Positions 17,830 through 42,823 of a stretch of DNA of 64,000 nt are shown here, piece after piece. Position numbers and translations under genes: made by a program. The DNA is from Macrostomum lignano (lineage: Eukaryota): NCBI GenBank assembly GCA_002269645.1, contig NIVC01000398.1, forward strand, positions 1 to 64,000, in the 5' to 3' direction. A model generated the notes under the pieces. The model was not told the DNA's origin. It saw nothing but the letters and a program-made list of their open reading frames with translations, and ran no database searches. Each line of letters begins with the position of its first letter. Position 1 is the first letter of the stretch.

Positions 17830-18250
17830 ACCCCCACCACGTTGTCTATGACCCCTTTTTTCATGCCCCACCACCTTTCTATCCCTCTCCACTGACTGTC
17901 TACGGCCCTTATCTCTCACACCCACCACCTCTCTATCCCTCTCCACTGACTGTCTATGGCCCTTATCTCTCACACCCACCACCTCTCTATCCCTCTCCAC
18001 TGACTGTCTATGGCCCTTATCTCTCACACCCACCACCTCTCTATCCCTCTCCACTGACTGTCTATGGTCCTTATCTCTCACACCCACCACCCCTCTATCC
18101 CTCCCCACTGACTGTCTATGGCCCTTATCTCTCACACGCACCACCTTTCTATCCCTCCCCACTGACTGTCCATGGCCCTTATCTCTCACACCCACCACCT
18201 CTCTATCCTTCTCCACTGACTGTCTATGGTCCTTATCTCTCACACCCCCT
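17830..18250. repeat. 54-bp minisatellite, block 2
   Basis: Tandem periodicity with the same unit family as block 1. Confidence 0.9.
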
Positions 18251-18708
18251 ACGAGAAGCTTCCGCACTTGCCTCCACACTTACCCTGGCAAACTCAGGCC
18301 CAGTGGCAAGGGTCTCCCCGCCAGGCAGCAGCCGCACGCCGTCAACGGTGGCTTCAACGTTTTCAACAGCATTAGCACCGTCGCTGCACCCGCCGTCACC
18401 CGACTGTTGCGTTAGCAAGCGGAACTGACGACGCACAGGCGGAACTGAAGCTGCAGCAGCTCCAGCCGCCTCTACGTGCAGCTCAATCAAGCGAGCAGTT
18501 GTTAGCAGTAGTCCGGAGTTCGAATCCACGGCTACAATTTGCTCGCTTGGACAGCATCGACCAAGTTGATGAAGCAACGCGGCAGCGGACGTCGCTGAAC
18601 TGTCGGGCGCGTCGACATCGACAATGGAAATCGGCGTCGATTTTGTTGACGACAGAGCCGACTGCATCCGCGATGACAGTTGAACAGGTGTAAACTCTTT
18701 GCGACGCA
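18233..18708 (-). CDS. VPS13: VPS13-like exon 19 (PH-like C-terminal domain, stop at 18233)
   Basis: TTTTGTAG|TG phase 1. AAALLHQL..GLLLTTARLIELHV resembles the VPS13 C-terminal PH fold. An internal donor AGG|GTAAGT at 18284 could lead to another last exon. Confidence 0.75.
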
Positions 18709-18944
18709 CTACAAAAGATTTTTTGGAGTTTTTTGGATAACTTCAAATACCAATCTTGCTTAAGTTCTTTGACAGAACTCTTAACTAAATTAACGCTAGT
18801 ATTCAACCTTGGAAATTTTTGTTCCACATGGAGGAGAAAATATTTTGCAAAAATCTTTAGAAGACGATTAGGGAGTTTTTCTGGATTTTTTTCTGGAAGT
18901 TTCTGGAGCAATCTCTGAAAAATTCTGGGAAATCCCTGAGGAGT

Positions 18945-19235
18945 TCTAGGGGAAACCCTGATGAGTTCTGGTTCTGGGGGAATCCCTGATGAGTTCTGGG
19001 GGAATCCCCGAGGAATTCTGGGGGAATCCCTGAGGAATTTTGGGGGAATCCCTGAGGAATTCTGGGGGAATCCCTGAGGAATTCTGGGGGAATCCCTGAG
19101 GAATTCTGGGGGAATCCCTGAGGAATTCTGGGGGAATCCCTGAGGAATTCTAAGGGAATCCCTGAGGAATTCTGGGGGAATCCTTAAGGAATTCTGGGGA
19201 ATCCCTGAGGACTTTTTGGGAAATTCCAAGAGACT
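18945..19235. repeat. 22-bp minisatellite (GGGGGAATCCCTGAGGAATTCT)n, intronic
   Basis: Tandem periodicity. Confidence 0.9.
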
Positions 19236-19361
19236 TCCAGGGGGAATCGCTAAGAAATTTTTAGAAAATCGTTAGAGGGAGCCCTGGATTCTTCCATAAA
19301 ATTTGCTGGGTAATATCGTCAATAAATCAACTAAAAATGAGAATATAGAAAAATAACTCAC

Positions 19362-19762
19362 GACAGGTGCCGAGCAGGCAGCCCAGCGGCAGGGTGACGG
19401 CCATCCCTGGCCGACGCTTAATCAGCCGCTTGAACTCCCTTCTGGCCCACTGCTGGGCGTCGCCACCGTCGTTGTCCGGCCAGGCGACTCCGAGAGCGTT
19501 GCCAGCGGGAACCGTGGCTCGAAGACGCCAGCCGTTGCCTTGGGCCGCAGATTCTGACGTTCGCAACGGCAGATTTTCGGCGTACAAACGCAGATTGCGC
19601 AACAGTTGGAACCGGTCGATGCGAACACCACTCGATGGCGCGTCAGACTGGGGCGTCAGCGTGGCCAGCAGGCGGACGAAGAACGCCGGGTCGTAGCAGA
19701 GGTCCAGGCGACCGAGTGCGAGCGACATCTCAGAGATGTGCAGCGGTGGCGGCTGGGCAGAC
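19362..19762 (-). CDS. VPS13: VPS13-like exon 18
   Basis: HISEMSLALGRLDLCYDPAFFVRLLATLT resembles RIKYFKVLIQEMDLRLDLGFIYALTDLMT. It ends LPLGCLLGTC, like ILGLDVLGNP. Phases 2/1. Confidence 0.85.
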
Positions 19763-19779
19763 CTGGGTGATGTAAATTC

Positions 19780-20025
19780 AGCGATGGACTATCTAAGATT
19801 AGCGATGGATTATGTAAGATTAGCGATGGATTATCTAAGATTAGCGATGGATTATCTAAGATTAGCGATGGATTATGTAAGATTAGCGATGGATTATCTA
19901 AGATTAGCGATGGATTATCTAAGATTAGCGATGAATTATCTAAGATTGGCGATGGATTATCTAAGATTAGCGATGGATTATTTAAGATCAGCGATGGATT
20001 ATATAAGATTAGCGATGGATTATGT
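19780..20025. repeat. 21-bp minisatellite (TAAGATTAGCGATGGATTATC)n, block 1
   Basis: Tandem periodicity. Confidence 0.95.
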
Positions 20026-20344
20026 CCAGGCCTGGGCTGCGGACCCTCCGCAGCAGGCCCAGTATCCGTTCTCCCACTGACTAAGCAGCACCGATTGCTC
20101 CCCTCACTGACTCACCCGAGTCACCCCCACTGCACGCTCCCCATTGCTTCATGCTACATATCTCCTGTACGTTTGTGTTCGTGCCACAGCACGCCTATAC
20201 GTTTCGGGCCCCAGAGCCCAGAAATATAACGGTAAACACGACCGCCTCAGTCTCTCCACTTTTTGTACTGACTGCCTGCCTGCTCACGGGATCCGCTCCC
20301 AGGCAGAGCTTTGAACTAAACTCCAAGACTCACTTTCAAGTCAT

Positions 20345-20790
20345 TACAGATTATATAAGATTAGCGATGGATTATATAAGATTAGCGATGGATTATGTAA
20401 GATTAGCGATGGATTATGTAAGATTAGCGAAGGATTATCGTAGATTAGCGATGGATTATGTAGGATTAGCGATGGATTATCTAAGATTAGCGATGGATTA
20501 TCTAAGATTAGCGATAGATAATATAAGATTAGCGATGGATTATGTATGTAGGATTAGCGATAGATTATCGAAGATGAGCGATGGATCATATAAGATTAGC
20601 AATGGATTATCTAAGATTAGCGATGGATTATATAAGATTAGCGATGGATTATGTAAGATTAGCGATGGATTATGTAAGATTAACGATGGATTATATAAGA
20701 TTAGCGATGAATTATCGAAGATTAGCGATGGATTATATAAGATTAGCGATGGATTATGTAGAATTAGCGATAGATTATCGAAGATTAGCA
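20345..20790. repeat. 21-bp minisatellite, block 2, same unit
   Basis: Tandem periodicity. Confidence 0.95.
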
Positions 20791-20797
20791 GACTCAC

Positions 20798-22443
20798 GCT
20801 CCATCATCCTCGACTTCAGCAGAACCGGCAGCAGCCATGCAGACTTTCAAATCCGCTCCTAAAAGACGACCTTCACCAAGGACGTCAGCTTTAGGCCTTG
20901 CCTTCAAGGACAGCGGCACCCTGAACTGGTCGGGCGCCTGAGGACACGACTGGTCCACCTGCAAGCGGCCCAGCTTGATCTGGAATCGAACTGGACGATT
21001 AACTTCTCCTTTGTCAGGCTGTTGCGAAAATTCGACTTGCCCGACAAATCCAGGAAGGCAGCGTCGGTAGAGACGTCGCAATTTCGGCTGTAACATCGTC
21101 ATGCCGACCTCCATACTACTGCTAATACTACTGCTAGAAGTAATAGCGTTGTCATTGACCAATTGTTCAAAACAGACTCTCCATTGGTCGGAATCGACCA
21201 GCTCCACTGACGATTGATTTGACAATACCGACGAGACCGGCGTAGACAGCCAGCGTCGGTAAAGCCGTTCGACAGCAGCCGCTGCGTCGGGTTTCAATCG
21301 CACGAAACGACGCTTGCCGCCAGTTAATTTGGTTTTCAACCATACGGGATTGACGTTATCGATGGTGAGGTTGGCAACGTTTCTACAGCCTCTGCCGGAG
21401 CCTCTGCAGCGCTGGCAAGCTGCGCCGTCAGGCGTCGTTGTCGTTGTTGTCAGTAGGTTCGAATCCAAACGTAACAGAATGCCAATGCTGTGCAGGTCGA
21501 CGCGGAACTTCCACGCTTGGCTTCCGTTTCCGGTTCCGGTTCCATTCTCGCGTCCAGTACCGTCACCTGACCCACTTCCGGTTCGATTCTCGCGTTTAGT
21601 TCCGTCACCTGACCCACTTCCGGTTCGATTCTCGCGTCCAGCATAGTCACCTGACCCACTTCCGGTTCGATTCTCGCGTCCAGCATAGTCACCTGACCCA
21701 CTTCCGGTTCGATTCTCGCGTCCAGTTCCGTCACCTGACCCACTTCCGGTTCGATTCTCGCGTCCAGTTCCGTTACCTGACCCACTTCCGGTTCGATTCT
21801 CTCGTTCAGTTCTGTCACCTAACCCACTTCCGGTTCGATTCTCGCGTCCAGTATCGTCACCTGACCCACTTCCGGTTCGATTCTCGCGTCTAGTTCCGTC
21901 AACTGACACGCCTCCGGTTTGAGTTTCTCGAACAGTATTCCCATTTGAACCACTTCCGGTACGATTTTTCCGTCCATTTCCGTTACTAGAAATAGTTCCG
22001 GTTTGATTTTTGCACTTACTAGCGTCATCGGAACTATTTCCAGTTGGTTTCTCTTGTCCAGAATCGTTACCATTAAAGCTATTGGGTGGTTCATGTTCAG
22101 TTTCATTTCCTGCCACATGTACACGTCCGATCTCGTCATTTTTAGTACTTGGTCTACTTCCGGCAAACGCTTGACGCAAATTTTCGACTAACTGAGCGAT
22201 CGCAGCGGCAACGGCAGGCGACACGACCAAGCAGATTCTGTGAAGCGGACAGGACAGCATTACGGATGTAACATCGGCAGACCAGTTGGCCTCGAGTTGG
22301 AATCGCGGATAAGTGCAGTTCGACTGATAGCTATCAGATGAAGGAGTCTCCAGAATCAGCAGAGGCTCTTCAATGAGTTCCGCGCTTGTGCTGGTCAGCG
22401 AGGCGCTGGCGGATGGGCGTTCGAAGGTCGCAGAGCAGGAGGC
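20798..22443 (-). CDS. VPS13: VPS13-like exon 17 (1646 bp; repeat linker, WWE-like insert and C-terminal RBG region)
   Basis: Open from CTGCAG|GCC to GC|GTGAGT. FRVDLHSIGILL, NVANLTIDNVNPVW, AVERLYRRW, MTMLQPKLRRLYRRCLPG and FQIKLGRLQVDQ align by eye with the VPS13A post-VAB segment. Confidence 0.9.
21530..21960 (-). repeat. Coding 42-bp tandem repeat (RENRTGSGSGDGTG, about 9 good and several degenerate units) inside VPS13 exon 17
   Basis: Unit CACCTGACCCACTTCCGGTTCGATTCTCGCGTCCAGTTCCGT. The frame is preserved throughout. Confidence 0.9.
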
Positions 22444-22454
22444 CTGCAGTTAAG

Positions 22455-22690
22455 ACGGGAATGTGTAGACAAAGATGCAAGGATACAGAAAGGACACACA
22501 GCACAGATGCAGACACAAGGACACAAAGAAAATATAAGGCACGAGGACACAGATATAAAGAGACAAGGACACAAGGACACAAAAACCAAAACACAAGAAG
22601 AGGACACAAGAACACAGACACGAGGATACAAAAACACAGAGAGAGACAATTGCCAGGTGCAAAGCCAAACAGACATGCTGACAGAACACT
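22455..22690. repeat. Degenerate CA/GA-rich simple repeat, intronic
   Basis: ACACAG/GACACA-rich low complexity. Confidence 0.7.
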
Positions 22691-22721
22691 ACGGCTAAAA
22701 GAGATGCTGGCCCACACTCAC

Positions 22722-22835
22722 ATGTTCAAAGCCAACTGTGAGATGGTCAAGGCTAAACGCAACGCTGCCTGCGCCAGTGGGTGAGTCGCCAATCACCATG
22801 GAAACGGTCTTTGTAGCGACAGTCAAGCTGCCAAA
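22722..22835 (-). CDS. VPS13: VPS13-like exon 16 (absent from the ORF track)
   Basis: FGSLTVATKTVSMVIGDSPTGAGSVAFSLDHLTVGFEH. TTTTCAG| to |GTGAGT, phases 0/0. Confidence 0.8.
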
Positions 22836-22993
22836 CTGAAAATTAGCAATGTCATTTAGGAATTTATTATAACTTCGCAGAACACTGTTGGCAAAATAGT
22901 CGCGCGTGCAACATACTACTAGTAATTAAAATGTCAGTAGTATTTTATATTAACAATCACAACAAATCAGATTAAATCAGTTTAAAGCACATA

Positions 22994-23422
22994 CTAAAAT
23001 AACTAAATGGGCCACTCAGCACATTTGCGTGCAAGCTACTTTCAGTTCAGTAGTAAGTCAAACTAAAGCGTTTTAATGCATTTTTAAAGCCATTTAAACT
23101 CATTTATTGGCTAAAGCCCAAACCGCGCCTTTCCACACTACCCCACCACTCCGCCCGCCCCAATTTTTATTGCCTTTCTCGGAATTCCAGCCTAAAGCTG
23201 CCATGTACAGTTCAGTGGACTGGGCAATGTACATTGTGGCTAAACCAATTAGCAAGTTGTTTACACTTGCAAGCTTTGGCTTCTAAACTTATCAAAGTCA
23301 TTTCAGCTGCCTTTAATTTTATAAAACAGCTTATGTATTCTTCTTTGCTACTGAACTGAAAGTAGAAAGCTGTTTTACTTAGTAAATGTGCCTGCTGCAG
23401 TTGTCCATCTAGATAATTCTAT
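22994..23422 (+). mobile_element. TA-flanked MITE, family copy 2
   Basis: Homologous to 12679-13108 over its length, with the same TIR and TA flanks. Confidence 0.8.
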
Positions 23423-23430
23423 TATGTATC

Positions 23431-23531
23431 AGATTAAACATGCCTTTTGAGGGAGTTATTTGTATAAATCACGAGGGCCTGAGGCCCGAGGGATTTATGA
23501 AAATAACTCCCGAAAAAGGCATGTGTAATCT
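23431..23531. repeat. About 100-bp imperfect palindrome (hairpin-type mini element)
   Basis: AGATTAAACATGCCTTTTGAGGGAGTTATTTGTATAAATC pairs with GATTTATGAAAATAACTCCCGAAAAAGGCATGTGTAATCT around a GGCCTGAGGCC centre. Confidence 0.85.
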
Positions 23532-23839
23532 CGTATAAACCATAGACATTAAGACTTTGCGGGATATTATTGAATATTACCAAATAAAATCCCGGAGAAC
23601 GCAAATATTGTCACGGAAAGTCTTTATTTCTATGGATTATCTGTGGTTTATGGTAAAAAGATTTACACTACACTCAACAAGAGTTTTTATTAGTCTTCAA
23701 TACTCAGTAGGCATGCAAAATTATAGAAAGAAACATTCAACACCATTAACACGGTGTGGGTATTGAGTAGATAAATTTGACTAGCGCCAAACAAGCAGAG
23801 CTTGAGTTTTGTAATTAGCATATTTCTATCTATCATTAC

Positions 23840-23874
23840 CATCTTAGATGAGGCTGGAGACGCTGAGGTGGTGG
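23840..23874 (-). CDS. VPS13: VPS13-like exon 15 (35-bp micro-exon, tentative)
   Basis: TTGCAG|CC..ATG|GTAATG supplies the phase 1-to-0 link needed between exons 14 and 16. Confidence 0.5.
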
Positions 23875-24134
23875 CTGCAATATTGGCGACTCGTGTTGTA
23901 AAAAAACTTGGCAGAGAAATGAAAATATTTAAAAAATAAGACAAAAAACAGAATAACTACTCATATTAAGGCAAGTGTGCGTGCAATTTTGTTTTAATAA
24001 TAACTAATCTACATTGAATTACTTTTTCAAACTCATTTAAACTACTTTAAGTAGTTTGATTTCTTTTAAAATAATAATTCAAGGCAAAAGCTTGGACAAA
24101 TAAAGAATCATTAAAATAGCAACTGCTCTCTCAC

Positions 24135-24288
24135 CAGCGGTCTGTTGAGGCCTTAGCAACGGTTGCCAAGTGTTGACAATGGAAACAGCGCTACTCACAG
24201 CGGAAGGAGCAATTCGAATATTGAGTCGTGATTTGAAGATCAAAGTAGGAGCAGGCAGCGATAGACAAATAGTCTCGGTGCTGAGCAG
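24135..24288 (-). CDS. VPS13: VPS13-like exon 14
   Basis: LLSTETICLSLP...NTWQPLLRP, similar to the VPS13 WEPLIEP motif. CGCAG| to |GTGAGA, phases 0/1. Confidence 0.8.
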
Positions 24289-24359
24289 CTGCGAGTGTTG
24301 GGGCAACAGGTTCAACAGGTAAACAAAATATTTTCATTGTCCGAACAAAATCTCACAGT

Positions 24360-24640
24360 TCGGCATCAAAATCTCACCGCAAGACTGCATTTCGATCAAA
24401 ATCTCACCGCAAGACTGCATTTCGATCAAAATCTCACCCTAGATTCCAATCTGGGATAGAATTCTCACCCTGTGATTAAAACCTCACCCTTTGATCAAAA
24501 TCTCACTCTATAATTAAAATCTCATTATGTGATCAAAATCTCACCCTGTGATCAAAATCTCATTATATGTTCTAAATCTCACTCTAAGCGCAAAATCTTA
24601 CCATGTGATCGAAATCTCACAACTAGATCACAGTTAAGGA
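24360..24640. repeat. Degenerate tandem repeat with an ATCAAAATCTCAC core
   Basis: Recurring motif at roughly 24-34 bp spacing. Confidence 0.75.
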
Positions 24641-24725
24641 TAAAAATTTCACCCACATCCCCAGTAAAAATCTAGCCAATGGGGAACTTTGCAAGCTAAC
24701 AAACTGTCGACCTTCAAACGCTCAC

Positions 24726-25021
24726 CTCAATACCATCAGCAATCGCAGAATCCTGAAGTGTCATTGGCTTCCGCAAGACATCATTATAAAAGGTCAAACA
24801 AAGATCAGTCAATTCTGTCTCGCTAAATGAGCCGTTGAAACCGCCAAGTTGAAAGCAAAATGCGTTGCCGCCGCCGCTAGCAGTTTGGTTGCCATGGTTA
24901 CTATTTGGCTGGGGGCGGGCATTTTGAAAAATTTGCACACGCAACGCCGAAGTTTCAACGCTCAGCGCGGGCGAAAATCGCTGCTCTGGCGAGGCTGCCG
25001 CGGCTGCGACCGACGATGGCT
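24726..25021 (-). CDS. VPS13: VPS13-like exon 13
   Basis: PSSVAAAA..LSVETSALRVQIF..FCFQLGGFNGSF..LTFYNDVL. TCTCCAG| to |GTGAGC, phases 1/0. Confidence 0.8.
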
Positions 25022-25132
25022 CTGGAGAAAAGAATAGAAAAAATACTACTCTTACTACTCAATAAAAGTTTCTCAGTAGACATGCGGAGAAAATAGCTGT
25101 ATCCTTGCTATAAGCAAAGAAAAAAATGAAAA

Positions 25133-25396
25133 AAGACAGACAGACTAACAGACAGAAAGACAGGACAGACAGACAGACAGACAGACAGACAGATAAGACA
25201 GATAAGACAGACAGACAGGACAGACAGACAGACAGGACAGACAGACAGACAGATAAGACAGACAGACAGACAGATAAGACAGATAAGACAGACAGACAGG
25301 ACAGACAGACAGACAGACAGACAGGACAGACAGACAGACAGACAGATAAGACAGACAGACAGACAGATAAGACAGATAAGACAGACAGACAGACAC

Positions 25397-25438
<42 letters not shown>

Positions 25439-25460
25439 GGACAGGCTACAGGCAGACAGA
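25133..25460. repeat. (GACA)n/(GATAA) microsatellite
   Basis: Direct reading. Confidence 0.95.
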
Positions 25461-25466
25461 ACCTAC

Positions 25467-25681
25467 CAGTTTCCCGAGGCTTGGCTTGGTTGCTAGGCGC
25501 GGGCTGACCCTGAGCAGCCATCGTTGCCATGCAGTCGCTAAGCAGAGGCAGCTCATCAGGCCACAGCCGCAATTGGCAGGCTGCCAACCTGACTGTCAGC
25601 GAGCGAGGCAAACTGCGAATCGATAATAGATCGGTAGGTTCGGAGTTCGAGTCCGACTTCGAGACGCTGCGACTGAAGATG
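25467..25681 (-). CDS. VPS13: VPS13-like exon 12
   Basis: IFSRSVSK..LTVRLAACQLRLWPDELPLLSDCMA. TTCCAG| to |GTAGGT, phases 2/1. A micro-exon near 25741-25767 is possible. Confidence 0.8.
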
Positions 25682-25804
25682 CTGGAAGATGCGAAAAAAG
25701 ATAATGGCACTGTTGGGGAGTACACGCGTACTTTTCGCTTACGTGTACAGGTAGGTAGTCAGGACTAATCTGGCTTCAGCTTCGGTCATCCGCTTAAACG
25801 CAGT

Positions 25805-26205
25805 CTAGATACCTCTCAGATACAATCTAGATACCCTCAGATGCAATCTAGATACCCTCAGATGCAATCTAGATACCCTCCCAGGTGCAATCTAGATACC
25901 CTCCCAGGTGCAATCTAGATACCCTCCCAGGTGCAATCTAGATACCCTAAGATACGATCTAGATACCCTCCCAGGTAAAATCTAGATACCCTCAGGTGCA
26001 ATCTCGATACCCTCTCAGATTCAATCTCGATACCCTCTCAGATACAATCTAGATACCCTCAGATGCAATCTAGATACCCTCAGATGCAATCTCGATACCC
26101 TCAGTTGCAATCTTGATACCTTAGATGCAATCTAGATACACTTAGATGCAATCTAGATACCCTCAGATGCAATCTAGATACCCTCAGATGCAATCTAGAT
26201 ACCCA
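25805..26205. repeat. 21-23-bp minisatellite (GATGCAATCTAGATACCCTCA)n
   Basis: Tandem periodicity. Confidence 0.9.
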
Positions 26206-26227
26206 CTCAAAACTAGCCAAGCCTCAC

Positions 26228-27081
26228 CTCCATCTGTCCAGCGGCTCTCTCTGGACGTCGCCCTCGCCCTCGCCCTCGCTCTCGTCATGCGCCACGGCCT
26301 CAACGCCGGCGTCAGCCAGCCGAAGCTGCCAGATCGTTGACGGTCGTTGCCGACGCAGCACCAAGCCGACGGAGCAGGCTCCCAAGGACAGGTCGTAGGC
26401 CCACCTGGTGCCCGCAGGCTGGCCCAGCTGATCAACTCCATCAACGGAATCCTCGCCGCTCTCGGCGATCTCCGACGCCGCTAGCGAAGCAATCGACAGC
26501 AAATCGGATCGATTGGCTACAAGCCTTAGTCCGGGCGTTTCCATGGCAACAGCCAGCCAAGTTTGGCAACAATGCTCGTCAGAAATGGTGGCATCCGAGC
26601 ACCGCAGCCTGGCAATCTGAGCAGTGAGCACCGGCTGCTCATTACCGATTTTATTACCGTCGCTCTCGCCGTAAAACCGAAGCAGTCTCGAACTATTTCC
26701 GAGTTGGTTGCTACCCTGCCCGGCAACCACAAGATCGCCAACGCGGCTGCCCGCGGCCAGCTGACAGACCGAGGCCGACAAGCCAGAGATTCGAACCCGC
26801 AACTCATCAGCCAGTAGAGCCATGTCGGATAATGACGTCATCACCGCATCCTCTGAGGTGAGCAGCTCCTTCAAAGCCGGCCGACTGTAGCCGAACTCGT
26901 AGAATTGCACGGCATCAGTTGTGTCATCGGGATTTGACTGAGCAGAGGAGCTGGTGCTGCTCAACAACAGGCTGCCCAAGTCTGTGTACAGGGCGCGGTT
27001 TCCGGCGCCGCCACGGAGCGGCAGGATGAGTCGAGGCGCGCTGATCTCAGCCCGGGCTGTCAGGCCGCCGGCTTGGCGAAT
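26228..27081 (-). CDS. VPS13: VPS13-like exon 11
   Basis: LTARAEISAPRLILPL..ALYTDLGSLLLSS, a typical VPS13 repeat motif. GCCAG| to |GTGAGG, phases 0/2. Confidence 0.9.
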
Positions 27082-27158
27082 CTGGCAGGTTTTGAAAATT
27101 CAACAAAAAATTCATCGACATACTGTATCTGAGGAAAAAATTATTTTTATAAACTGAC

Positions 27159-27251
27159 CTCAGTCTGGGCCGATTCAAGTACGTCGCCAGCTTGCCAGTT
27201 TAAGCGAGATTGTAGCTGCTCCAGCGGCTCTTGAATTGAAGTGCTGAACTC
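27159..27251 (-). CDS. VPS13: VPS13-like exon 10 (93 bp, absent from the ORF track)
   Basis: EFSTSIQEPLEQLQSRLNWQAGDVLESAQTE. CCCAG| to |GTCAGT, phases 0/0. Confidence 0.75.
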
Positions 27252-27299
27252 CTGGGATTTTTTTAATGGCTGGATGTTCACGTATTAAATAATTTTAAA

Positions 27300-31240: not shown

Positions 31241-31269
31241 TACAAAAATGTTTGAGATTCTAGTCTCAC

Positions 31270-32933: not shown

Positions 32934-33024
32934 CTGTTGGGTATTGATGGAGGGGTAGAGGGTGCGTGTAAAAATCAAGGCGTCAGCCGGCCGGCCTCTC
33001 TGCGACGGAGAGGCGACTGTTGCG

Positions 33025-34040
33025 CGTCACATGAGTTATAGAATTGTAAAAGAGCCGCGAAAAAAGTCCTCCTAATAATCGTTGTGTTGGCGCTTAACTT
33101 TCTACTAACTTAGTAGGCTTAATAAGAGTTCAATAGGCTACACCACAGGTACTAGAATAACTAGATGGGCACTCACGCATATATACTCAGTATAACAGCT
33201 TTCTACCTACTTTCAGTTCAGTAGCAAAGAAGAATACATAAGCTGTTTTATAAAATTCAAGGCAGCTGAAATCACTTTGATAAATTTAGAAGCCCAAACT
33301 TCCAGGCGTAAACACCTTGCTATTTGGTTCAGCAGAAATGTACATTGGCCAGTCCACTGAAATGTACATGGCAGCTTTAGGCTGGAATTCCGAGAAAGGC
33401 AATAAAAATTGGGGCGATGCGGGGGGGGGGTAGTGTGGTAGGCGCGGTTGGAGGGTTTAAGCTGGAGATAAGAGGCAATAAATGAGCCTTGGCTTGGCTT
33501 TAAAAATAAATTAAAATGCTTCTGTTTAACTTACTACTGAACTGAAAGTAGCTTACATGCAAATGTGCTGAGTGGCCCATCTAGTTGATGATGGAATCCA
33601 GTGTTTCTACAGCGCCTCTAGCACGCCTCAAATACGACTCTCTCAGTCGCAGACAATAAAACGCTTCAATGTGATCCTTCGGCGACTTTTTGACGACTCT
33701 GAGTCGTCTAGAGTTACTTCTCTCTTATCATACTTGTTACCTGCAACGACTCTGAAAACTGGCCCCTGAGCATGCACACACGATTAAAACGGTACCTAGG
33801 GCTAAGAAGCGTCACATACTACTTGCGTTGCCCCAAAGTTGTTTCAGATTCGTTGCAGGTTGCAGAGTTGTAACTGAGGCGTTCCAGAGCCGCTGTAAAA
33901 TCGCTGAGTTGCGTCCAAAGCGCACCAGTGTCACTCTATGAATTTTAGAATTGCATTTCGCATTTAGTAGAAAGTTAAGCGCTAACACAACGACTGGTGG
34001 ACGACTTTTTCGCAGCTATTTTATGGTTTTGCAACTTAGG
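33025..34040. mobile_element. Degenerate inverted-repeat element hosting MITE copy 3
   Basis: GTCGTTGTGTTRGCGCTTAACTTTCTACTAA at about 33085-33108 is inverted at about 33962-33992. A related sequence lies at 58070-58290. Confidence 0.55.
33152..33590 (-). mobile_element. TA-flanked MITE, family copy 3 (inverted)
   Basis: Reverse-complement homology to copies 1 and 2. Confidence 0.8.
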
Positions 34041-34243
34041 TGATCCGCTCTCAATACAGTCGTTTGAGTTGTCAAAAAAACAAGAGTTACCCATCGTACA
34101 TCGTATAGAGACATCGGCTCTAACTTTCCCTAATATCTCACACTTTGCATATCATATTATTGTACACGACTAGCCCCATGCCCAATTGTTGTGTACAAGC
34201 CCGCCCAATTCCGGAAATTAGAGATTTTTGCATTAAAACTCAC

Positions 34244-34430
34244 AACGCAATGCACAATGCGACAGGCTCCAATATCCAGGATGTAGGGCGATTTGTCTGG
34301 TCGGCAGAGTTTAACAAATTTTGACTGGCCGTTTGGCAGCTTGGTGTGACAACAGCGGCAGGCCTCTGTGGCAACCAGCTGCCTGCCATCGTAGCCGAGT
34401 GCCGACAGGGAGCCTAGCGAAGCTTTCAGG
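34244..34430 (-). CDS. VPS13: VPS13-like exon 5
   Basis: [15 protein letters not shown]...[20 protein letters not shown]| to |GTGAGT, phases 2/0. Confidence 0.8.
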
Positions 34431-34474
34431 CTGTGGAGGATAGATAGAATGAATGTTTGTGTGTGGCATGGAGC

Positions 34475-34501
34475 ACAGACAGACAGACAGACAGATAGAT
34501 G

Positions 34502-34541
<40 letters not shown>

Positions 34542-34554
34542 CACACATAGATAA

Positions 34555-34591
<37 letters not shown>

Positions 34592-34592
34592 C

Positions 34593-34668
<76 letters not shown>
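34475..34668. repeat. (GATA)n microsatellite
   Basis: Direct reading. Confidence 0.97.
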
Positions 34669-35024
34669 TCATCGCAGTCAGCAGTTTTTCAAGGTAAAAG
34701 CGAAACTTAGTGAGTTTATTTGAGACCACTGTGTACTTTTATCTGTTATCTGTTAAGCACATGCGGGTTCGCCCTCTCTGTCTTATAAGCGTACTCACCT
34801 GTACTTCTTAGCGATCCGCTTTAAACTGGCTTCAATTTTATCCAATTTCACGTCTAAGATAGAAGTCCGACTGCAATGTAGAAAAAAGTCGTAAAATTCT
34901 GCTACATTCTTTTAGAACATCAGGAAATTGTCAAAAACATTACATAGTGAGTGTTCTGGCGCACTTTTTTAGCGAAAATTATTTTTGTGCTTTCAAATCC
35001 ATTACAGATTTCATTATCAAGGTA

Positions 35025-35420
35025 TTAATTCCTAATTAGAGATCCAGTTATTCAAGGTATGAATCCCTAATTAGAGATCCCATTATTCAAGTTATTAATC
35101 CCTAATTAGAGATCCCATCAACAAAGTATGAATCCCTAATTAGAGATCCCATCAACAAAGTATGAATCCCTAATTAGAGATCCCATCATCAAAGTATGAA
35201 TCTCTAATTAGAGATCCCATCATCAAAGTATGAATCTCTAATTAGAGATCCCATCATCAAAGTATGAATCCCTAATTAGAGATCCCATCATCAAAGTATG
35301 AATCCCTAATTAGAGATCCCATCAACAAAGTATGAATCCCTAATTAGAGATCCCATCATCAAAGTATGAATCCCTAATTAGAGATCCCATCATCAAAGTA
35401 TGAATCTCTAATTAGATATC
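35025..35420. repeat. 34-bp minisatellite (AATCCCTAATTAGAGATCCCATCATCAAAGTATG)n
   Basis: Tandem periodicity. Confidence 0.95.
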
Positions 35421-35489
35421 CAACAAGGTCATGTGAAGCGACTGTGAAGCGAAAATCACCAAAAAGTACATCCCCTGAGTACTGCTCAC

Positions 35490-35662
35490 CCTTCGCGCAG
35501 TGCAAAGCAGATTTGATCAGCGTCCAGCATTACTTTCGCATTAAACTGGTTAGCAGCGGCACCAGCAGAGTCGCTATCTCTATTGCGACTAAAGCCAGCT
35601 GCACTGGAATCAGCGCCTCTGGCATTGTTGGTGGCTGCGCGAACATCTTGACGGAACAATCT
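35490..35662 (-). CDS. VPS13: VPS13-like exon 4
   Basis: RLFRQDVRAA...FNAKVMLDADQICFALRE. CGCAG| to |GTGAGC, phases 0/2. Confidence 0.8.
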
Positions 35663-35747
35663 CTGCGATATAGATATAGTGTATAGCACATAAATGGTTA
35701 GAAAAATCACACTAAATTTTATTTCTTGTAAAATAAAAAACACTTAC

Positions 35748-35930
35748 ATTAAGTCTATCAACTTGGCCAGTAAGCAAGTCGTATTGTTTACTAGTCATGT
35801 CGAATTTGAAACCGCGAATAAAAATTTTTAGTACCGCTCTTGGTTGGGCGTTTGTTTCTATTAGACTGACGTTCAGACTGATTGATAGAGGCTGAAGCAC
35901 TGCAATGTAGCGTTTGGTGACCAGTTTTCG
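35748..35930 (-). CDS. VPS13: VPS13-like exon 3
   Basis: RKLVTKRYIAVLQPLSISLNVSL...FKFDMTSKQYDLL. AACAG| to |GTAAGT, phases 0/0. Confidence 0.85.
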
Positions 35931-35949
35931 CTGTTAGTTGGGAGCGAGA

Positions 35950-36415
35950 GTACATTGAGGTAAGGGTGTTGGGGGCTAAACTGGAGTGAGTGTACGTTGG
36001 GGCAGGGGATTGAAGCCTAGAGGGGAGTGAGTGTACATTGGGGCAGGGGGTTGGGGCCTTGATAAGAGCGAGTGTACATTGGGGCAGGTGGTTGGGGCCT
36101 AGACGGGAGTGAGTGCACATTGTGAAAGGGGGTTGGGGCCTAGACTGGAGTGAGTGTACATTAGGGCAGGGGATTGAAGCCTAGACGGGAGTGGGAGTGA
36201 GTGTACATTGGGGCAGGGGATTGGGGCCTAGACTCGAGTGAGTGTATATTGGGGCAGGGGGTTGGGGCCTAGACTGGAGTGAGATTACATTGGGGCAGGG
36301 GGTTGGGGCCTAGACTGGAGTGAGATTACATTGGGGCAGGGGGTTGGGGCCTAGACTGGAGTGAGATTACATTGGGGCAGGGGGTTGGGGCCTAGACGGG
36401 AGTGAGTGTACATTA
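35950..36415. repeat. 41-bp G-rich minisatellite (GGGGCAGGGGGTTGGGGCCTAGACTGGAGTGAGTGTACATT)n
   Basis: Tandem periodicity. Confidence 0.9.
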
Positions 36416-36769
36416 AAGTTTTTGAAAGGGATACAAATCGCGAATAATTTATTTACCGTGATGAAATTTCAAACTGTGACCGGTAAATACTTCCGACATT
36501 GCTGCTTTAATATCGTCCTGAAATACAATTAGAAATATTTCCTTTTCCGTTAAGTAAATTCAGTCTTTCTAGAACATAAAAGTAAAAAATACAAAACTAA
36601 ACAACTGACATGCTGACTTTGCTGGCTCAGCGGAGGCGACAAGTGCATTGTCAATGAGTGCAATTCGACCGACTGGAATGAATGGTTTTGAAAATTGAAA
36701 TTTACGAGCTGTCATTCGAAGTTACAAATTATTGGCAATACATTAATGGCGAAAAGCTCCACTACACCT

Positions 36770-38215
36770 TATCTGTAAGCTCCACTCTCCCTCATCTGTA
36801 TTCTGTAAGCTCCACTCTCCCTTATCTGTAAGCTCCACTCTCCCTCATCTGTAAGCTGAACTCTCCCTTATCTGCAAGCTCCATTCTCAATAATCTGTAA
36901 GCTCCACTCTCCCTTATCTGTAAGCTCCACTCTCCCTTATCTGTAAGCTCCACTCTCCCTTATCTGTAAGCTCCACTCTCCCTTATCTGTAAGCTCCACT
37001 CTCCCTTATCTGTAAGCTCCACTCTCCCTTATCTGTAAGCTCCACTCTCCCTTATCTGTAAGCTAAACTCTACTTTATCTGTAAGCTCCACTCTCCCTTA
37101 TCTGTAAGCTCCACTCTCCCTCATCTGTAAGCTGAACTCTCCTTATCTGTAAGCTCCACTCTCCCTCATCTGTAAGCTGAACTCTCCTTTATCTGTAAGC
37201 TCCACTCTCCCTCATCTGTAAGCTAAACTCTCCCTTATCTGTAAGCTCCACTCTCCCTTATCTGCAAGCTCCATTCTCAATTATCTGTAAGCTCCACTCT
37301 CCCTTATCTGTAAGCTCCACTCTCCCTCATCTGTAAGCTGAACTCTCCCTTATCTGCAAGCTCCATTCTCAATAATCTGTAAGCTCCACTCTCCCTTATC
37401 TGTAAGCTGAACTCTCCCTTATCTGTAAGCTCCACTCTCCCTCATCTGTAAGCTCCACTCTCCCTTATTTGTAAGCTCCACTCTCCCTTATCTGTAAGCT
37501 CCACTCTCCCTCATCTGTAAGCTGAACTCTCCCTTATCTGTAAGCTCCACTCTCCCTTATCTGTAAGCTCCACTCTCCCTCATCTGTAAGCTGAACTCTC
37601 CCTTATCTGCAAGCTCCATTCTCAATAATCTGTAAGCTCCACTCTCCCTTATCTGTAAGCTGAACTCTCCCTTATCTGTAAGCTCCACTCTCCCTCATCT
37701 GTAAGCTCCACTCTCCCTTATTTGTAAGCTCCACTCTCCCTCATCTGTAAGCTGAACTCTCCCTTATCTGTAAGCTCCACTCTCCCTTATCTGTAAGCTC
37801 CACTCTCCCTTATCTGTAAGCTCCACTCTCCCTCATCTGTAAGCTGAACTCTCCCTTATCTGCAAGCTCCACTCTCCCTTATCTGTAAGCTCCACTCTCC
37901 CTCATCTGTAAGCTGAACTCTCCCTTATCTGTAAGCTCCACTCTCCCTCATCTGTAAGCTCCACTCTCCCTTATTTGTAAGCTCCACTCTCCCTCATCTG
38001 TAAGCTGAACTCTCCCTTATCTGTAAGCTCCACTCTCCCTTATCTGTAAGCTCCACTCTCCCTTATCTGTAAGCTCCACTCTCCCTCATCTGTAAGCTGA
38101 ACTCTCCCTTATCTGCAAGCTCCATTCTCAATAATCTGTAAGCTCCACTCTCCCTTACCCTGGTATCTGTAAGCTCCACTCTCCCTTATTTGTAAGCTCC
38201 ACTCTCTTTAACCTG
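36770..38215. repeat. 23-bp minisatellite (ATCTGTAAGCTCCACTCTCCCTT)n, about 60 copies
   Basis: Tandem periodicity. Confidence 0.97.
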
Positions 38216-38275
38216 CAAGCCTCATCATTCCTTAACTATTAAAACGCCCATATACACGAACAAGCAGATATTTAC

Positions 38276-38778
38276 CCTTTGATCTCCGTGGAAAAGCAGC
38301 TTCTCAAACGCCACACCAGCTAATAACGGTTTGGATTCGTCAGACTTGTCTTCATAGCAAACATGCAACTGGTGCACCTCAATGCATTTTATTAGCTCTG
38401 GCATTTTCTGAAGCCAAGACAACCAATTTTGAGGCTTTTGTTGCTGTTGCGAACTCTCCGATTCATCAGATTTGACAGGCAATACTGCAGAGTGAGGCAA
38501 TTTCGATATTGAAGACTCTCGACGCCTAACTAATAGGTGAACATCCCGCATGACTAACTCCAGTCCTTGTCCGGGAAACAGCCGATTCTTTGAGCCAAAC
38601 CAGCTGACTGCATAGTTCAAAATTAGCTTGCCGGTGGCTTGAAAACTCTTCCTATTGAGTTCGATACTTCCAATATTGTAGTGGACTAAATCAAGTCCCG
38701 GTGCCACTTGGGCCAGTCTCTGGCGGACATCCTGATTTGCCTGATCAGCATTGGATAAGTTGAGCAGCAGGAATTTAC
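38276..38778 (-). CDS. VPS13: VPS13-like exon 2 (Chorein_N-like)
   Basis: KFLLLNLS..LAQVAPGLDLVHYNIGSIEL..LELVMRDVHLLVRR..QNWLSWLQ. Acceptor CCCAG|, donor AGG|GTAAAT. Confidence 0.85.
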
Positions 38779-41484
38779 CTGGGTTTTGGTGGACCGAAGC
38801 AACGGGTGAAAAAAATTGTTGAAAATAGTTGACTTTGATCTTTAATTTAAATGATTCACTTTTAGAGTTTATAGAGTGCATCATTTTGCATTAACTTTAA
38901 ATTTGGCATCTAAATCCTTAACAACCCAAAATATCAAATTTAAACCATGTTTTTTTCAAGTTAAATGCTATTTCATTCAATTTACATATTTTTATAGTGT
39001 GGAAGGCCTTCTTACATGAAATACTAACTTTCTATGAAATTTAAAATCTGTACATATTTTCTAGACAATTTTGTAGTATAAATACAAGTAAATACCCATT
39101 TTGGACTGAACCTTGTAATCCTTTCAACTAGAAAACAAATTTATTAGTGAGTTTCAAGTAAATATTGAGAATTGTATCAAAATTAGTTAATTTTTAATAA
39201 TTAAGGAGCATGTACTGAATATACTACTAATAAGTAGACTACCTAAATCAGAAATACATAAATAATACCAGAGACTGTGACCCTCTAATCTCAGTAATGC
39301 CTAGGACAAATATTTTTATTTTAAGAAAAGTCTTTTTTATAGTGTATTTTTAAGGGAAAGTAAATATATTCATCCATTTAGTCTCTAAATAATCCATAAA
39401 AATATAAGTGTGGCATGTGTTTAGTTTTATTTATTATATTAAACTAATTCAAATTGAAATTAATGTAAATAAAGAAAACAGTTAATAAAATATGACAAGG
39501 TATTGCCTTGTTTCTTATAAAGTTCTTCTATACATGGTAGGAGTATACTTCTCTATTTAAATCTCAAATGCTATCACCAATGTTGAATAGGGATATAGTT
39601 CTATCTTATTAAATCCTATTGTCAAGTAACTAAATTTGTAATAGTGCTCACTTAATCTTAGCTACAGTCACCAAGCTTATGCTAGTGATAAGCTTCTGAT
39701 ATACTTTTAGTACTATTCTTTGTACTGATAGTATATCATATAAAACTGGTAGCATATGTGTTCTTTTGGCCTAAGCAGTCTTATGGCACTGTACTTTGTT
39801 TTATCTTATGTATTATGGTTGTCTCCTATTTAGGTTTTTCTCTCAGTCCAGGTGTTACTAGGATCAGAGGGTAATGGCTTACACTCTAGGTTTATTGCAC
39901 TGAAGTGAATTCTTAGATTCTATGTCTGGATATTCTTACCCTTTGGTAGATCTTCTGCCTTCTAAGGCAATTTTCTAGATTCTTAATCTAGAGGTCTTAT
40001 TCTATAAGAATGGAGTGAGTTCTCTCAATGTTAGGGCTTTCAATGTAATTTTTATATAGAATCTTAAAAAAAAGCAAAAAAAATTTCTCAAAAAAATTAA
40101 TAAAACAAACACAATCAAAAAGGAAAGCTAATATTTATTGTCTAATAGCATTGTAACAAAATCTCTCATTTTATGTTATATATGTTCTATATTATGTTAT
40201 ATGGGCAAAAAACACTGGCAATATTAATACAGTTGCTGTGCAAATAATGAGTGCCTATATATTTATAAGGTATTTTTGTACTAGAATTTTTTATAGACAA
40301 ATTTAAATTAACACTTGAAAAATAGTTATCTTATAATATTATAAGTTAAAACTAACAAAAGGTAACTGTGCAGGCATGATTTACATGTGTTTATAGCTTA
40401 GCAGTTGTTAGGCCTACTACTATTATTTATGCAAAATACAAGGGAAGGCCAAGGGGTATTTCAAAAAAGCAAGAATTAGACATTTGCTTTCAAAATGATA
40501 GATTATAGTCAAATATAAGTGGACTATAATAGCTGTGTATTATAGTATAACACCTATATTTATTTTAGTTACTATGTAAATAACAATAGTACTATTTACA
40601 CAGTGTCAGGCAAAAGATAGACAATAATAAACCTTCATTAAAAAAATAAATAATAAAACAAGGCAAAGCACAAAGATCTTTAGTCATTTAGAATGTTACT
40701 TTTATAAAACTTTTTCCTACTCTGAAATAAAAATAAAAACTTGGTATATTGATACTTTTATTGCAACTAACCCCTTTTAATTTTAAAGCAATATTTTTTA
40801 ATAATTAAAATACTACACTTAGAGACACGGCAACCATGTCTTTAATGCAAAAACTTATAGACACTGCAGCCATGTCTCTAAGTTTCCGCATTATAGGCAT
40901 GGCCACTGTGTCTAAAAGTATAGACCTAGTCACTATTAGAGACATGGCCACCATGTCAATAAAACTTGCATGGCAGCTGTATTGTTAATATTGAATGGGT
41001 ATGGGTTCACACTTAGAGACATAGTGGGTGGCCGTGTCGTTAATATTGAATGGGTTCACACTTATAGACATGGTGGGTGGCTGTGTCTCTAATATTGGAG
41101 CTTATAGGCACAGCTGCCATTGCCATGTATATAATCATTAATGGGATAAAAAGATCAATTGATTGAAAAGTCAGTTTTTTTATTTTTAAATTTTTAAAAA
41201 TTAGATCAAATTATTTCTTAATGAGTAACACAAAATCATTTTAAAGTGCAGCCGCAATTATATATGTAGCTACTGAAAATAAATTTTTTGATACATATTA
41301 GCCCACTTTAAGATTTAGTGTTACTCTTAGAAAAAACTAGCAATCTTCGCCCCCCGTTGGGGGACATCTGTATAGAACCTCTGTTCTCTACAAGTCACAA
41401 AAAGATAGCCAAAAAAGACCTTCACAAAGAAAACAGACAAAATACTCAAAGGAAGTGCAATGCAAAAAAAAATCATCCCAAGAC

Positions 41485-41660
41485 AGCAAGCATCCCCCAG
41501 ATAGCAAGCATCCTCCAGATTGCAAGCAACCCCCGGATAGCAAGCATCCCCCAGATAGCAAGCATCCCCCAGATAGCAAGCATCCCCCAGATAGCAAGCA
41601 TCCCCCAGATAGCAAGCATCCCCTACATAGATAGCATCCCCAAATAGCAAGCATCCACCA
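41485..41660. repeat. 18-bp minisatellite (CCCCAGATAGCAAGCATC)n
   Basis: Tandem periodicity. Confidence 0.9.
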
Positions 41661-41749
41661 GACAATAAGTAGCTAGTGCGACAATTTCCTTAGCATTATA
41701 GTGGCTCCTTTAAAATTTGCTTACTTTTATGTTTGAAATTGTGTAAATT

Positions 41750-42370
41750 TTATGTTTGACATGGTGGCTGTTTTATGTTCTACATGGCAACTGTTTTATG
41801 TTTGAAACGATGGCTTTTTAATGTCAGACATGGTGGCTCTTTTATGTTTTACATGGTGGCTCTTTTATGTTTGACATGGTGCCTCTTTAATGTTCGACAA
41901 AGTGGCTATTTAATGTTTCAAAAGGTGGCTTTTAAATGTTTGACATGGTGGCTCCTAAATGTTTGACATGGTGGCTCTTTAATGTTTGACATAAAGACAC
42001 ATATATAATTGACATGGTGGCTCTTAAATGTTTGACATGGTGGCTCTTTAATGTTTTTCATGGTATAGCTCTTTTATGTTCGACATGGTGGCTCTTTTAG
42101 GTTTGACATGGTGGGTTTTTTAGGTTTGACATGGTGGCTCTTAAATGTTTGACATGGTGGCTCTTAAATGTTTGACATGGTGGCTCTTTAATGTTTTACA
42201 TGGTGGCTCTTAAATGTTTGACATGGTGGCTCTTAAATGTTTGACATGGTAGCTCTTTAATATTCTACATTGTGGCTCTTAAGTGTTCGAAATGGTGGAT
42301 CTTTTAGGTTTGACATGATGGCTGTTTAATATTCAACATAGTGGCTCTTTAATATTCTACATGGTGGCAA
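41750..42370. repeat. 23-bp minisatellite (GACATGGTGGCTCTTAAATGTTT)n
   Basis: Tandem periodicity. Confidence 0.9.
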
Positions 42371-42447
42371 GTTGAAATTCTACATTAAAAAGTTCGAGTT
42401 GAAAAAAATTCTGTTTGCTCAAAAAATTCAAATTAAAAAAAAACTAT

Positions 42448-42515
42448 GACCACTTGGGATTCAAACCTAGCTACTCGCAATCACAAGGCAATCAACATAC
42501 CCACAAAGCCACCAC
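42448..42515 (-). pseudogene. Decayed tRNA-like sequence or tRNA-derived SINE head (His-like GTG loop)
   Basis: The minus strand reads GTGGTGGCTTTGTGG (A-box-like), then TGCCTTGTGAT, then GGTTTGAATCCC (B-box-like), followed by T-runs. The stems are poorly paired. Confidence 0.4.
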
Positions 42516-42741
42516 TTGCTTAAAAGAAAGGCCCTACAGAACACGCATTTTATATTGATGATTATAGCTATGCCTATAAGCTCAAATATTATAGACACGG
42601 CCGCTGTGCCTATAAGTACTCCATAATTAAAACGGACTAACTCTTGCAACAAAAATTATCAAAGGAATTCTTTATTTTAAAATCTAAGCACAGTTCCTTG
42701 AATATATCTAAAACATAAAAGAATAAAACATGAAAACTTAC

Positions 42742-42823
42742 CCTCTCGTAACAATGCTCGAAATGAAAAATGCTGTTGAATATAATATAATATTCCAACA
42801 AAGAACCTTAAAAATCGAGTCAT
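42742..42823 (-). CDS. VPS13: VPS13-like exon 1 (MTRFLRFFVGILYYIQQHFSFRALLRE-G)
   Basis: ATG at 42823 and donor G|GTAAGT (phase 1) matching exon 2. Its length fits the missing start of a Chorein_N domain. Confidence 0.6.

Follow-up and report, generated by a model that had tools for sequence, protein, structure and literature searches.

A faint VPS13-like signal in an annotated hypothetical gene of Macrostomum lignano

Does the flatworm Macrostomum lignano possess a VPS13 paralogue that has dispensed with its targeting modules? The question is raised by a gene in the 64,000-nucleotide stretch of contig NIVC01000398.1 (assembly GCA_002269645.1, positions 1 to 64,000; hereafter the window). The first-pass annotation of this stretch had described the gene, with 19 exons and 2,358 aa, as a VPS13 paralogue of an undescribed minimal architecture that keeps the lipid groove and a PH-like end and seems to have lost its targeting modules. 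VPS13 proteins contain a groove of 12–15 repeating beta-groove units and a VAB domain of six repeats, and are covered in Pfam by VPS13_N (PF12624), VPS13_M (PF25033), VPS13_VAB (PF25036) and VPS13_C (PF25037).

The gene and its copies in the genome

The gene lies on the minus strand, runs from 42823 (or 38884) to 17620 and is phase-consistent and multi-exon, as had been proposed. Exons were found by tblastn with P0001, an M. lignano protein that is the only database homologue, and refined at their splice sites. The resulting model A has a coding span of 17620..38884 (minus strand) with an ATG at 38884 and a TAA ending at 17620, and comprises 22 exons and a CDS of 7,245 nt (2,414 aa) with GT-AG introns throughout and 0 in-frame stops. 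Its exons, all on the minus strand, are 38884-38276, 36672-36610, 36517-36457 and 35899-35748 (exons 1-4), 35662-35490, 34870-34799, 34430-34244 and 32933-32443 (5-8), 31606-31270, 30980-30630, 28648-28178 and 27251-27159 (9-12), 27081-26228, 25681-25467, 25021-24726 and 24288-24135 (13-16), 23874-23840, 22835-22722, 22443-20798 and 19762-19362 (17-20), and 18708-18284 and 17664-17620 (21-22). An alternative first coding exon (42742..42823, minus strand), which codes for MTRFLRFFVGILYYIQQHFSFRALLRE-G and has a GTAAGT donor after 42742, gives model B with 23 exons and 2,406 aa, an ATG at 42823 and a second exon that begins at 38778 (G|KFLLLNLS...). The ATG at 42823, already chosen in the first-pass annotation, is also the start of the GenBank models P0124 (PAA83878.1) and P0125; neither 5' variant is preferred by profile score. 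A further model, P0002, uses an exon at 43103-43195. The earlier 3' limit at 18233 proved to be a stop codon met when the donor at 18284 is read through. The gene in fact ends with a coding exon at 17620..17664 (minus strand), 45 nt that code for KFLELMLPENDTAF and the stop and that are present in P0001, P0124 and P0125. The earlier exon count and protein length were near these values but inexact.

Within exon 19, an in-frame 42-bp tandem repeat (21534..21983, minus strand; ~10.7 copies according to TRF) codes for a 14-aa unit, GRENRTGSGSGDGT, and its translation forms part of a low-complexity linker of ~240 aa. GenBank models P0001 and P0124 lack 84 aa (252 nt) of this repeat, P0125 and P0127 keep them, and the exon containing the repeat has the same length in the DNA of a second locus (L001) as in the window.

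Is the gene new? The description as undescribed does not hold, as the gene matches UniProt A0A1I8HBZ0 / A0A1I8JDS6 and PAA83878.1, the hypothetical protein BOX15_Mlig009510g1, from which the window model differs by one residue and the 84-aa gap in the repeat. Moreover, UniProt has automatically named fragments of the protein VPS13, VPS13_mid_rpt, VPS13_C and FSA_C domain-containing, and the full-length model P0124 FSA_C domain-containing. PAA83878.1, PAA50818.1 and PAA62105.1 (UniProt A0A267GCW8, A0A267DNE2 and A0A267EKN9) represent the same gene and its paralogues or alleles, are 97-100% identical and differ only in details of the gene model, namely the choice of the 5' exon and the treatment of the 84 repeat residues as intron. 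The M. lignano genome contains three or more nearly identical copies, that of the window included, and three loci carry intact open reading frames, 2,300-2,400 codons long and interrupted by 21-22 canonical introns. The second locus is collinear with the window and differs from it by 1.4% in exons and ~4% in aligned introns, an approximately 3-fold higher conservation of the exons. The dN/dS ratio between the two is 0.62 overall and ~0.5 outside the repeat, which indicates moderate constraint only. M. lignano thus has here a real protein-coding gene of the expressed type. When 1.84 billion representatives were searched exhaustively by phmmer with exon 1, 0 relatives emerged outside this species; the matches were an M. 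lignano model with faulty splicing and a TPR protein, the latter spurious. A word-indexed search with the joined N- and C-terminal parts gave 0 matches and also missed P0001 itself.

Similarity of the N-terminal ~400 residues to VPS13

To which family does the encoded protein belong? Its N-terminal similarity is weak, non-random and in register with VPS13. Pfam, run on single-exon open reading frames, on the entire protein and on ten overlapping fragments of it, returned no match beyond a sub-threshold VPS13_N (PF12624; E 0.0004-0.005, 15-19 bits at a cutoff of 80) at matching profile positions. This sole match covers the stretch HVCYED...KPLLAGVAFEKL (38291-38467, minus strand; aa 140-198) in exon 1, which encodes a chorein-N-like N-terminus according to Pfam, custom HMM and hhalign (38276..38884, minus strand; aa 1-203). 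Exons 2-6 (34799..36672, minus strand; aa 204-377), with the VLQPLSISLNVSL / KQYD motifs, complete a stretch of ~400 aa whose collinearity with the N-terminal part of VPS13 is seen with hmmsearch --max and hhalign. On a custom VPS13 N-terminal HMM the full protein reaches 14.0 bits and its first 420 aa alone 20 bits, and 0 of 2,000 shuffled sequences score above 4.1 bits. In addition, hhalign places query residues 34-387 in register with residues 32-381 of the VPS13 template (E 1.6e-4, probability 51%), and hmmsearch --max pairs HMM positions 124-297 with aa 138-285 and 485-546 with aa 336-392; the sub-hits at aa 139-290, 336-392, 1020-1069 and 2001-2074 are in VPS13 order. Since the shuffles and the hhalign E-value both speak for non-random similarity, remote homology is likely.

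The VPS13-like, collinear N-terminus thus stood up to analysis, whereas membership in the family gained no firm support, as the N-terminal region stays below the family threshold of PF12624 and far below true VPS13s on the custom profile. On the same custom profile, ATG2A reaches 30-43 bits, BLTP3B 30.5 bits and the VPS13s of sponge, rotifer and fungus 890-980 bits, approximately 50-fold above the protein encoded here. AlphaFold given a VPS13 alignment produced an N-terminal helix and beta-sheet (pLDDT 55, strands 65-83), for which Foldseek found the Vps13 N-terminal fragment 6CBC as the best PDB match, a circular result that indicates compatibility only. A sequence search of the PDB retrieved 0 VPS13, ATG2 or BLTP chains at E<=10. 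The columns invariant in VPS13 were dropped as evidence: 10 of 26 were matched in a MAFFT alignment, and shuffled and re-aligned sequences matched 7.4 on average and 14 at maximum.

The middle and C-terminal regions

How far does the likeness to VPS13 extend? The amphipathic beta periodicity of the protein is raised (z 3.2), to at least the level of true VPS13 fragments. For VPS13_M and the middle region no match was obtained with Pfam, a middle-region profile or a full-length fungal profile. Likewise, for VAB there was no PF25036 or SHR-BD match in Pfam and none with a pre-VAB profile; for VPS13_C and ATG_C none in Pfam, with 2- and 5-sequence C-terminal profiles or with hhalign; and for a C-terminal PH domain none in Pfam or with custom profiles. 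The one borderline match (20950..21171, minus strand; aa 2001-2074, ...MLQPKLRRLYRRCLPGFVGQVEF...VRFQIKLGRLQVDQ) corresponds to the junction between the last VAB repeat and 'wIQIDNQ' and is the best domain of a 5-sequence VPS13 profile (human VPS13A and VPS13C from the PDB plus three fungal sequences) with 3.4 bits, a score that one shuffled sequence in 2,000 attains. The best path of a pairwise Smith-Waterman alignment crosses this motif, runs through the by-eye motifs RLQVDQ...FRVPL / FFVRLLATL and is not significant (z 0.7-1.2). The match hints at a putative VAB remnant. Other look-alike VPS13 motifs failed controls.

VPS13A/C-type motifs in the right order, as initially reported, are borne out statistically for the N-terminal ~400 aa only, the C-terminal part contributing this one borderline match. 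Retention of the lipid groove and a PH-like end found no support past the N-terminus: the likeness to PH was seen by eye only, and an AlphaFold model of the last 531 aa, built from the single sequence without homologues, has an uninformative pLDDT of 32. As to the targeting modules, VAB, ATG_C and VPS13_C are without a match in Pfam and the custom profiles, but loss is inseparable from divergence: the middle and C-terminal groove of VPS13 is equally undetectable, so the missing matches may reflect divergence instead of loss.

Possible readings and comparison with known families

At present, the finding is mainly an already annotated hypothetical gene, correctly spotted, with a faint family signal. 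What could the protein be? With moderate confidence, we take it to be a very divergent, fast-evolving chorein-N protein, restricted to Macrostomum, that belongs to the bridge-like lipid-transfer (repeating beta-groove) superfamily and by sequence comes nearest to VPS13. Beyond the N-terminus the protein would then form a lipid groove and move lipids between membranes, and the gene may descend from a VPS13 duplicate in which most of VAB was replaced by the ~240-aa low-complexity linker.

A streamlined VPS13 with its targeting modules lost is possible. In its full form, in which a canonical flatworm VPS13 was duplicated and the copy retained the groove together with a PH-like C-terminus, lost VAB and ATG_C and acquired different targeting, we consider it unlikely. 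VPS13 provides the best and only profile match, the weak matches follow VPS13 order with one at the junction of the last VAB repeat and IDNQ, the protein is ~700-800 aa shorter than VPS13A with its linker roughly at the place of VAB, and the source names include VPS13_C; an ATG2A profile, made of two mammalian sequences only, gives -2.1 bits, and phmmer with a provisional BLTP3B sequence finds nothing. Against this stand an N-terminal score below those not only of true VPS13s but also of ATG2 and BLTP3, the missing signal for VPS13_M, VPS13_C, ATG_C and PH in Pfam and custom profiles, and a PH-like end that was seen by eye only. Could the protein instead be a divergent member of another bridge-like family (ATG2, BLTP3/SHIP164, BLTP1, BLTP2), or represent a chorein-N lineage of its own? 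Such families normally have no VAB and PH, whose absence would be explained without any loss, and according to precomputed annotations PF12624 also matches the N-termini of ATG2, which places the Pfam match at the superfamily level. FSA_C, used in the UniProt name, is a BLTP1-type signature, ATG2 and BLTP3B outscore the protein on the VPS13 profile, and 2,400 aa is near the length of ATG2 and BLTP2. However, ATG2_CAD, ATG_C, BLTP3, Apt1/Fmp27 and FSA_C give 0 matches in current Pfam at E<=10, the FSA_C name of UniProt was a lead that could not be reproduced, and the HxxYED / LQPLS / QY motifs are VPS13-type. A transmembrane anchor of BLTP1/BLTP2 type was rejected on sequence inspection, as neither N-terminal variant has a hydrophobic segment of ~20 residues or a convincing helix, the hydrophobic core in the alternative first exon measuring only ~9 residues. 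A better match to ATG2 or BLTP3 than to VPS13 was not found, a ranking made soft by the narrow comparison profiles (mammals only; a single provisional sequence), and we regard this second reading, the independent lineage included, as unlikely.

It could also be imagined that the protein is no lipid-transfer protein at all but either an orphan, partly disordered and confined to this taxon, or a duplicate in slow decay, its N-terminal likeness to VPS13 being convergent or a remnant. No family is reached at threshold, low-complexity tracts are large, the in-frame minisatellite is expanding, dN/dS is 0.5-0.6, pLDDT of the C-terminal part is low and several by-eye motif matches failed their controls. 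This explanation appears improbable, as none of the shuffles attains the N-terminal score, the register is kept from residue ~34 onward, long reading frames are intact at three loci and exons are better conserved than introns. The boldest reading, which we also hold to be doubtful, is that of a taxon-restricted minimal chorein-N lipid bridge, either a VPS13 duplicate with VAB reduced to one repeat and a disordered, minisatellite-encoded linker and with ATG_C lost, or a sixth, unrecognised lineage of bridge-like lipid-transfer proteins, that would dock to membranes unlike any described member. Should the protein work as a lipid bridge, it would reveal the extent to which chorein-N proteins can diverge and whether the VAB, ATG_C and PH modules by which VPS13 docks at contact sites are dispensable, which bears on the smallest architecture that can transfer lipids in bulk. 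M. lignano is amenable to RNAi and transgenesis, which makes the question testable.

How does the protein compare with known families? With BLTP3/SHIP164 (UHRF1BP1L) it shares a chorein-type N-terminus unaccompanied by VAB, ATG_C and PH, but BLTP3 has ~1,400-1,500 aa and a C-terminal coiled coil as compared to 2,400 aa here. ATG2, composed of Chorein_N, ATG2_CAD and ATG_C, resembles it in overall length, in the chorein-type N-terminus and in having no VAB or PH, and differs by its ATG2_CAD (PF13329) and ATG_C (PF09333), neither of which is matched here at E<=10. Among the VPS13s studied by Levine, only plant VPS13X is without a characteristic accessory domain, PH, and a VAB-less VPS13 would therefore be unprecedented in that survey (Levine, 2022; PMC7613979). 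From VPS13 the protein is set apart by 14-20 bits as opposed to ~900, by ~2,400 aa as opposed to at least 3,100 aa, by the lack of detectable VAB, VPS13_C, ATG_C and PH and by the presence of the ~240-aa low-complexity repeat linker. What it has in common with VPS13A/C-type proteins is the collinearity of its N-terminal ~400 aa with chorein-N and the first repeating beta-groove units (HxxYED, LQPLS, QY), a large size with richness in beta-type patterns and, possibly, the VAB-repeat/IDNQ remnant at aa 2001-2074.

Gene model and its annotation

Between 17.6 and 39 kb of the window, every long open frame that is not repetitive lies on the minus strand. A crude concatenation of these frames, used as query, recovered a single protein, P0001, which is listed as hypothetical in the flatworm Macrostomum lignano (2,330 aa) and whose database record carries no Pfam domain. 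The gene model, built by tblastn of P0001 onto the window and refinement of each exon junction, comprises 22 exons running from 38884 to 17620 (-), with GT..AG at every intron and a CDS of 7,245 nt encoding 2,414 aa. The database models P0124, P0125 and P0126, which cluster with P0001 at 90% identity, open with another first exon, MTRFLRFF...REG, found at 42823-42742 (-) with a consensus GTAAGT donor and joined to the acceptor at 38778, which yields 23 exons and 2,406 aa. Compared with P0124 (GenBank PAA83878.1, BOX15_Mlig009510g1), the protein starting at 42823 shows one residue difference and a gap of 84 aa within a repeat; it is 100% identical to P0126 and P0127. The UniProt model P0002 opens with an exon at about 43130-43190 (YRCGADYLPLNSVANESLR; window 43103-43195, -), joined to the same acceptor at 38778, and this exon is a candidate third 5' end. 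The first-pass annotation had essentially recognized a real gene, and its start at 42823 is the annotated ATG. Its end at 18233 is a stop met when the donor at 18284 is left unspliced; the last exon, with the true 3' coding end, lies at 17664-17620 (-). Database records already list the gene as a hypothetical protein, annotated but uncharacterised.

Repeats, paralogous locus and neighbouring features

The window is eukaryotic DNA that is rich in minisatellites. Between 17000 and 45000 most longer introns contain at least one array (period 4-54 bp, up to about 160 copies; for example 28702-30585, 36754-38157, 31696-32422 and 25134-25460), and these arrays make up the bulk of the divergence from a paralogous, collinear locus of the same assembly (L001, GCA_002269645.1). 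An in-frame repeat of 42 bp in exon 19 (21534-21983, -) encodes GRENRTGSGSGDGT units and sits in a low-complexity linker of about 240 aa in the protein of about 2,400 aa. It is here that 84 aa are missing from P0001 and P0124, while the DNA of L001 has the full exon length; the difference reflects either an intron called within the repeat or alternative splicing of the region. Exons of the two loci diverge by 1.4% (99/7,245 nt), with two 6-nt indels, both in frame, in exons 13 and 15; introns, where they align, diverge by about 4% and carry numerous indels. The overall dN/dS of 0.62 falls to about 0.5 once the 14-aa repeat is left out, and the whole reading frame is kept in three deposited loci. 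Taken together, these observations fit a functional, moderately constrained gene.

A 29/47-bp tandem repeat in translation accounts for the 335-aa open frame at 43775-44779 (-); the L001 counterpart of this frame is annotated as a 683-aa gene without a Pfam match, probably spuriously. Downstream of the VPS13-like gene, an open frame at 14161-14616 (-) encodes an F-box domain (PF00646, E 9e-6) and adjoins long serine/leucine/proline-rich repeat frames; it probably belongs to a neighbouring gene as one of its exons. Reverse transcriptase fragments at 4041-6038 (+; RVT_1, E 1.4e-5, YADD motif), with a related frame on the minus strand, look like a degraded non-LTR retroelement, and 5211-6088 has an 89% match in an intron of the L001 paralogue. 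A separate gene lies upstream, on the strand opposite the VPS13-like gene: its open frame at 55836-56546 (+) encodes a CASC3/Barentsz eIF4AIII-binding domain (PF09405, E 1.8e-5) and precedes proline/asparagine-rich repeat frames.

Resemblance to VPS13 along the protein

In the current Pfam library, which the first-pass annotation had suggested consulting, the sole match is a weak one to VPS13_N (PF12624; residues 140-198 on profile positions 123-187, E 0.0004-0.005), its 15-19 bits falling short of the cutoff of 80. A PDB sequence search returned no chain at E<=10, VPS13A and VPS13C being among the entries searched, and exhaustive phmmer comparison of exon 1 with 1.84 billion representatives turned up no relative beyond M. 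lignano. A word-indexed search with 759 aa of N- and C-terminal parts likewise gave nothing at E<=10; as it missed even P0001 (>95% identical), its empty result is weak evidence of absence.

The comparison set consisted of real N-terminal sequences from VPS13 and ATG2 proteins and of three fungal VPS13 loci in full length; the C-termini of human VPS13A and VPS13C were verified from PDB entries. An HMM of the VPS13 N-terminus made from 25 sequences and searched without filters scores the whole protein at 14.0 bits and its first 420 aa at 20 bits, and none of 2,000 shuffles (global or windowed) exceeds 4.1 bits. Hhalign aligns profile positions 32-381 with residues 34-387 (E 1.6e-4, probability 51%). 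A score above all shuffles and an alignment in register from the start make remote homology between the N-terminus and the chorein-N/VPS13-like region very probable.

Further along, neither the profiles for the VPS13 middle region, the pre-VAB region and VPS13_C/ATG_C/PH matched the protein, nor did two full-length fungal VPS13s give anything significant. A profile from the last VAB repeat to the 'wIQIDNQ' junction, a region picked after the motif was seen, scores 3.4 bits in a search of the whole protein (best domain aa 2001-2074, ...VRFQIKLGRLQVDQ); 1 of 2,000 shuffles reaches this score, and the putative match is borderline. Several resemblances that convince the eye fail controls: Smith-Waterman paths also cross the last-VAB-repeat motifs in alignments that are not significant, and the 10/26 matches to conserved columns of VPS13, counted after MAFFT alignment, are equalled by shuffled and re-aligned sequences. 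UniProt names fragments of the protein as VPS13, VPS13_mid_rpt, VPS13_C and FSA_C domain-containing, names that presumably reflect older signatures and are consistent with membership in the repeating beta-groove superfamily; the current Pfam library did not reproduce them.

Family assignment

Our best estimate, with moderate confidence, is that the gene would encode a chorein-N bridge-like lipid-transfer protein that is restricted to Macrostomum and evolves fast. That it is not a lipid bridge at all seems unlikely. Amphipathic beta periodicity is in excess (z 3.2), similar to or above that of true VPS13 fragments. AlphaFold supplied with a VPS13 alignment models the N-terminal 400 aa as a helix and long beta-strands (mean pLDDT 55, strands 65-83), and Foldseek places 6CBC (the Vps13 N-terminal crystal fragment), LPD-3 and Atg2, in this order, closest to this model; because the supplied alignment imposes the family, the agreement may be read as compatibility only. 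Without homologues, the C-terminal 531 aa reach a pLDDT of 32, which is uninformative on a PH-like end.

The originally proposed streamlined VPS13 paralogue, having shed VAB and ATG2_C and retained groove and PH, would be the most specific reading of the weak collinear signals. Its VPS13-like, collinear N-terminus stands; the VPS13_N score is sub-threshold, and VAB and VPS13_C/ATG_C membership was not recovered. The missing VAB and ATG_C matches are uninformative on loss, because the groove regions, which ought to be there, go undetected as well. The protein's length, about 2,400 aa including the linker, suggests that a full VAB domain is absent. The mammalian ATG2 profile scores the protein at -2.1 bits and an unverified BLTP3B sequence does not match it; VPS13 would thus be the nearest family, both comparisons being narrow. 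Descent from VPS13 proper is nevertheless rather doubtful, as the protein is by sequence more distant from VPS13 than members of other superfamily families: the N-terminal HMM gives 890-980 bits for VPS13 of sponge, rotifer and fungus, 30-43 bits for ATG2A, 30.5 bits for the same BLTP3B sequence and 14-20 bits for the window protein. Another or a new lineage is improbable to a slightly greater degree. If confirmed, the bridge-like protein would be an unusual variant whose family signal was already hinted at by automatic names. VAB, ATG_C and PH are widely conserved VPS13 accessory domains, and plant VPS13X is the only VPS13 in the survey without a characteristic one, its PH (Levine 2022, PMC7613979); a VPS13 without VAB would therefore be unusual.
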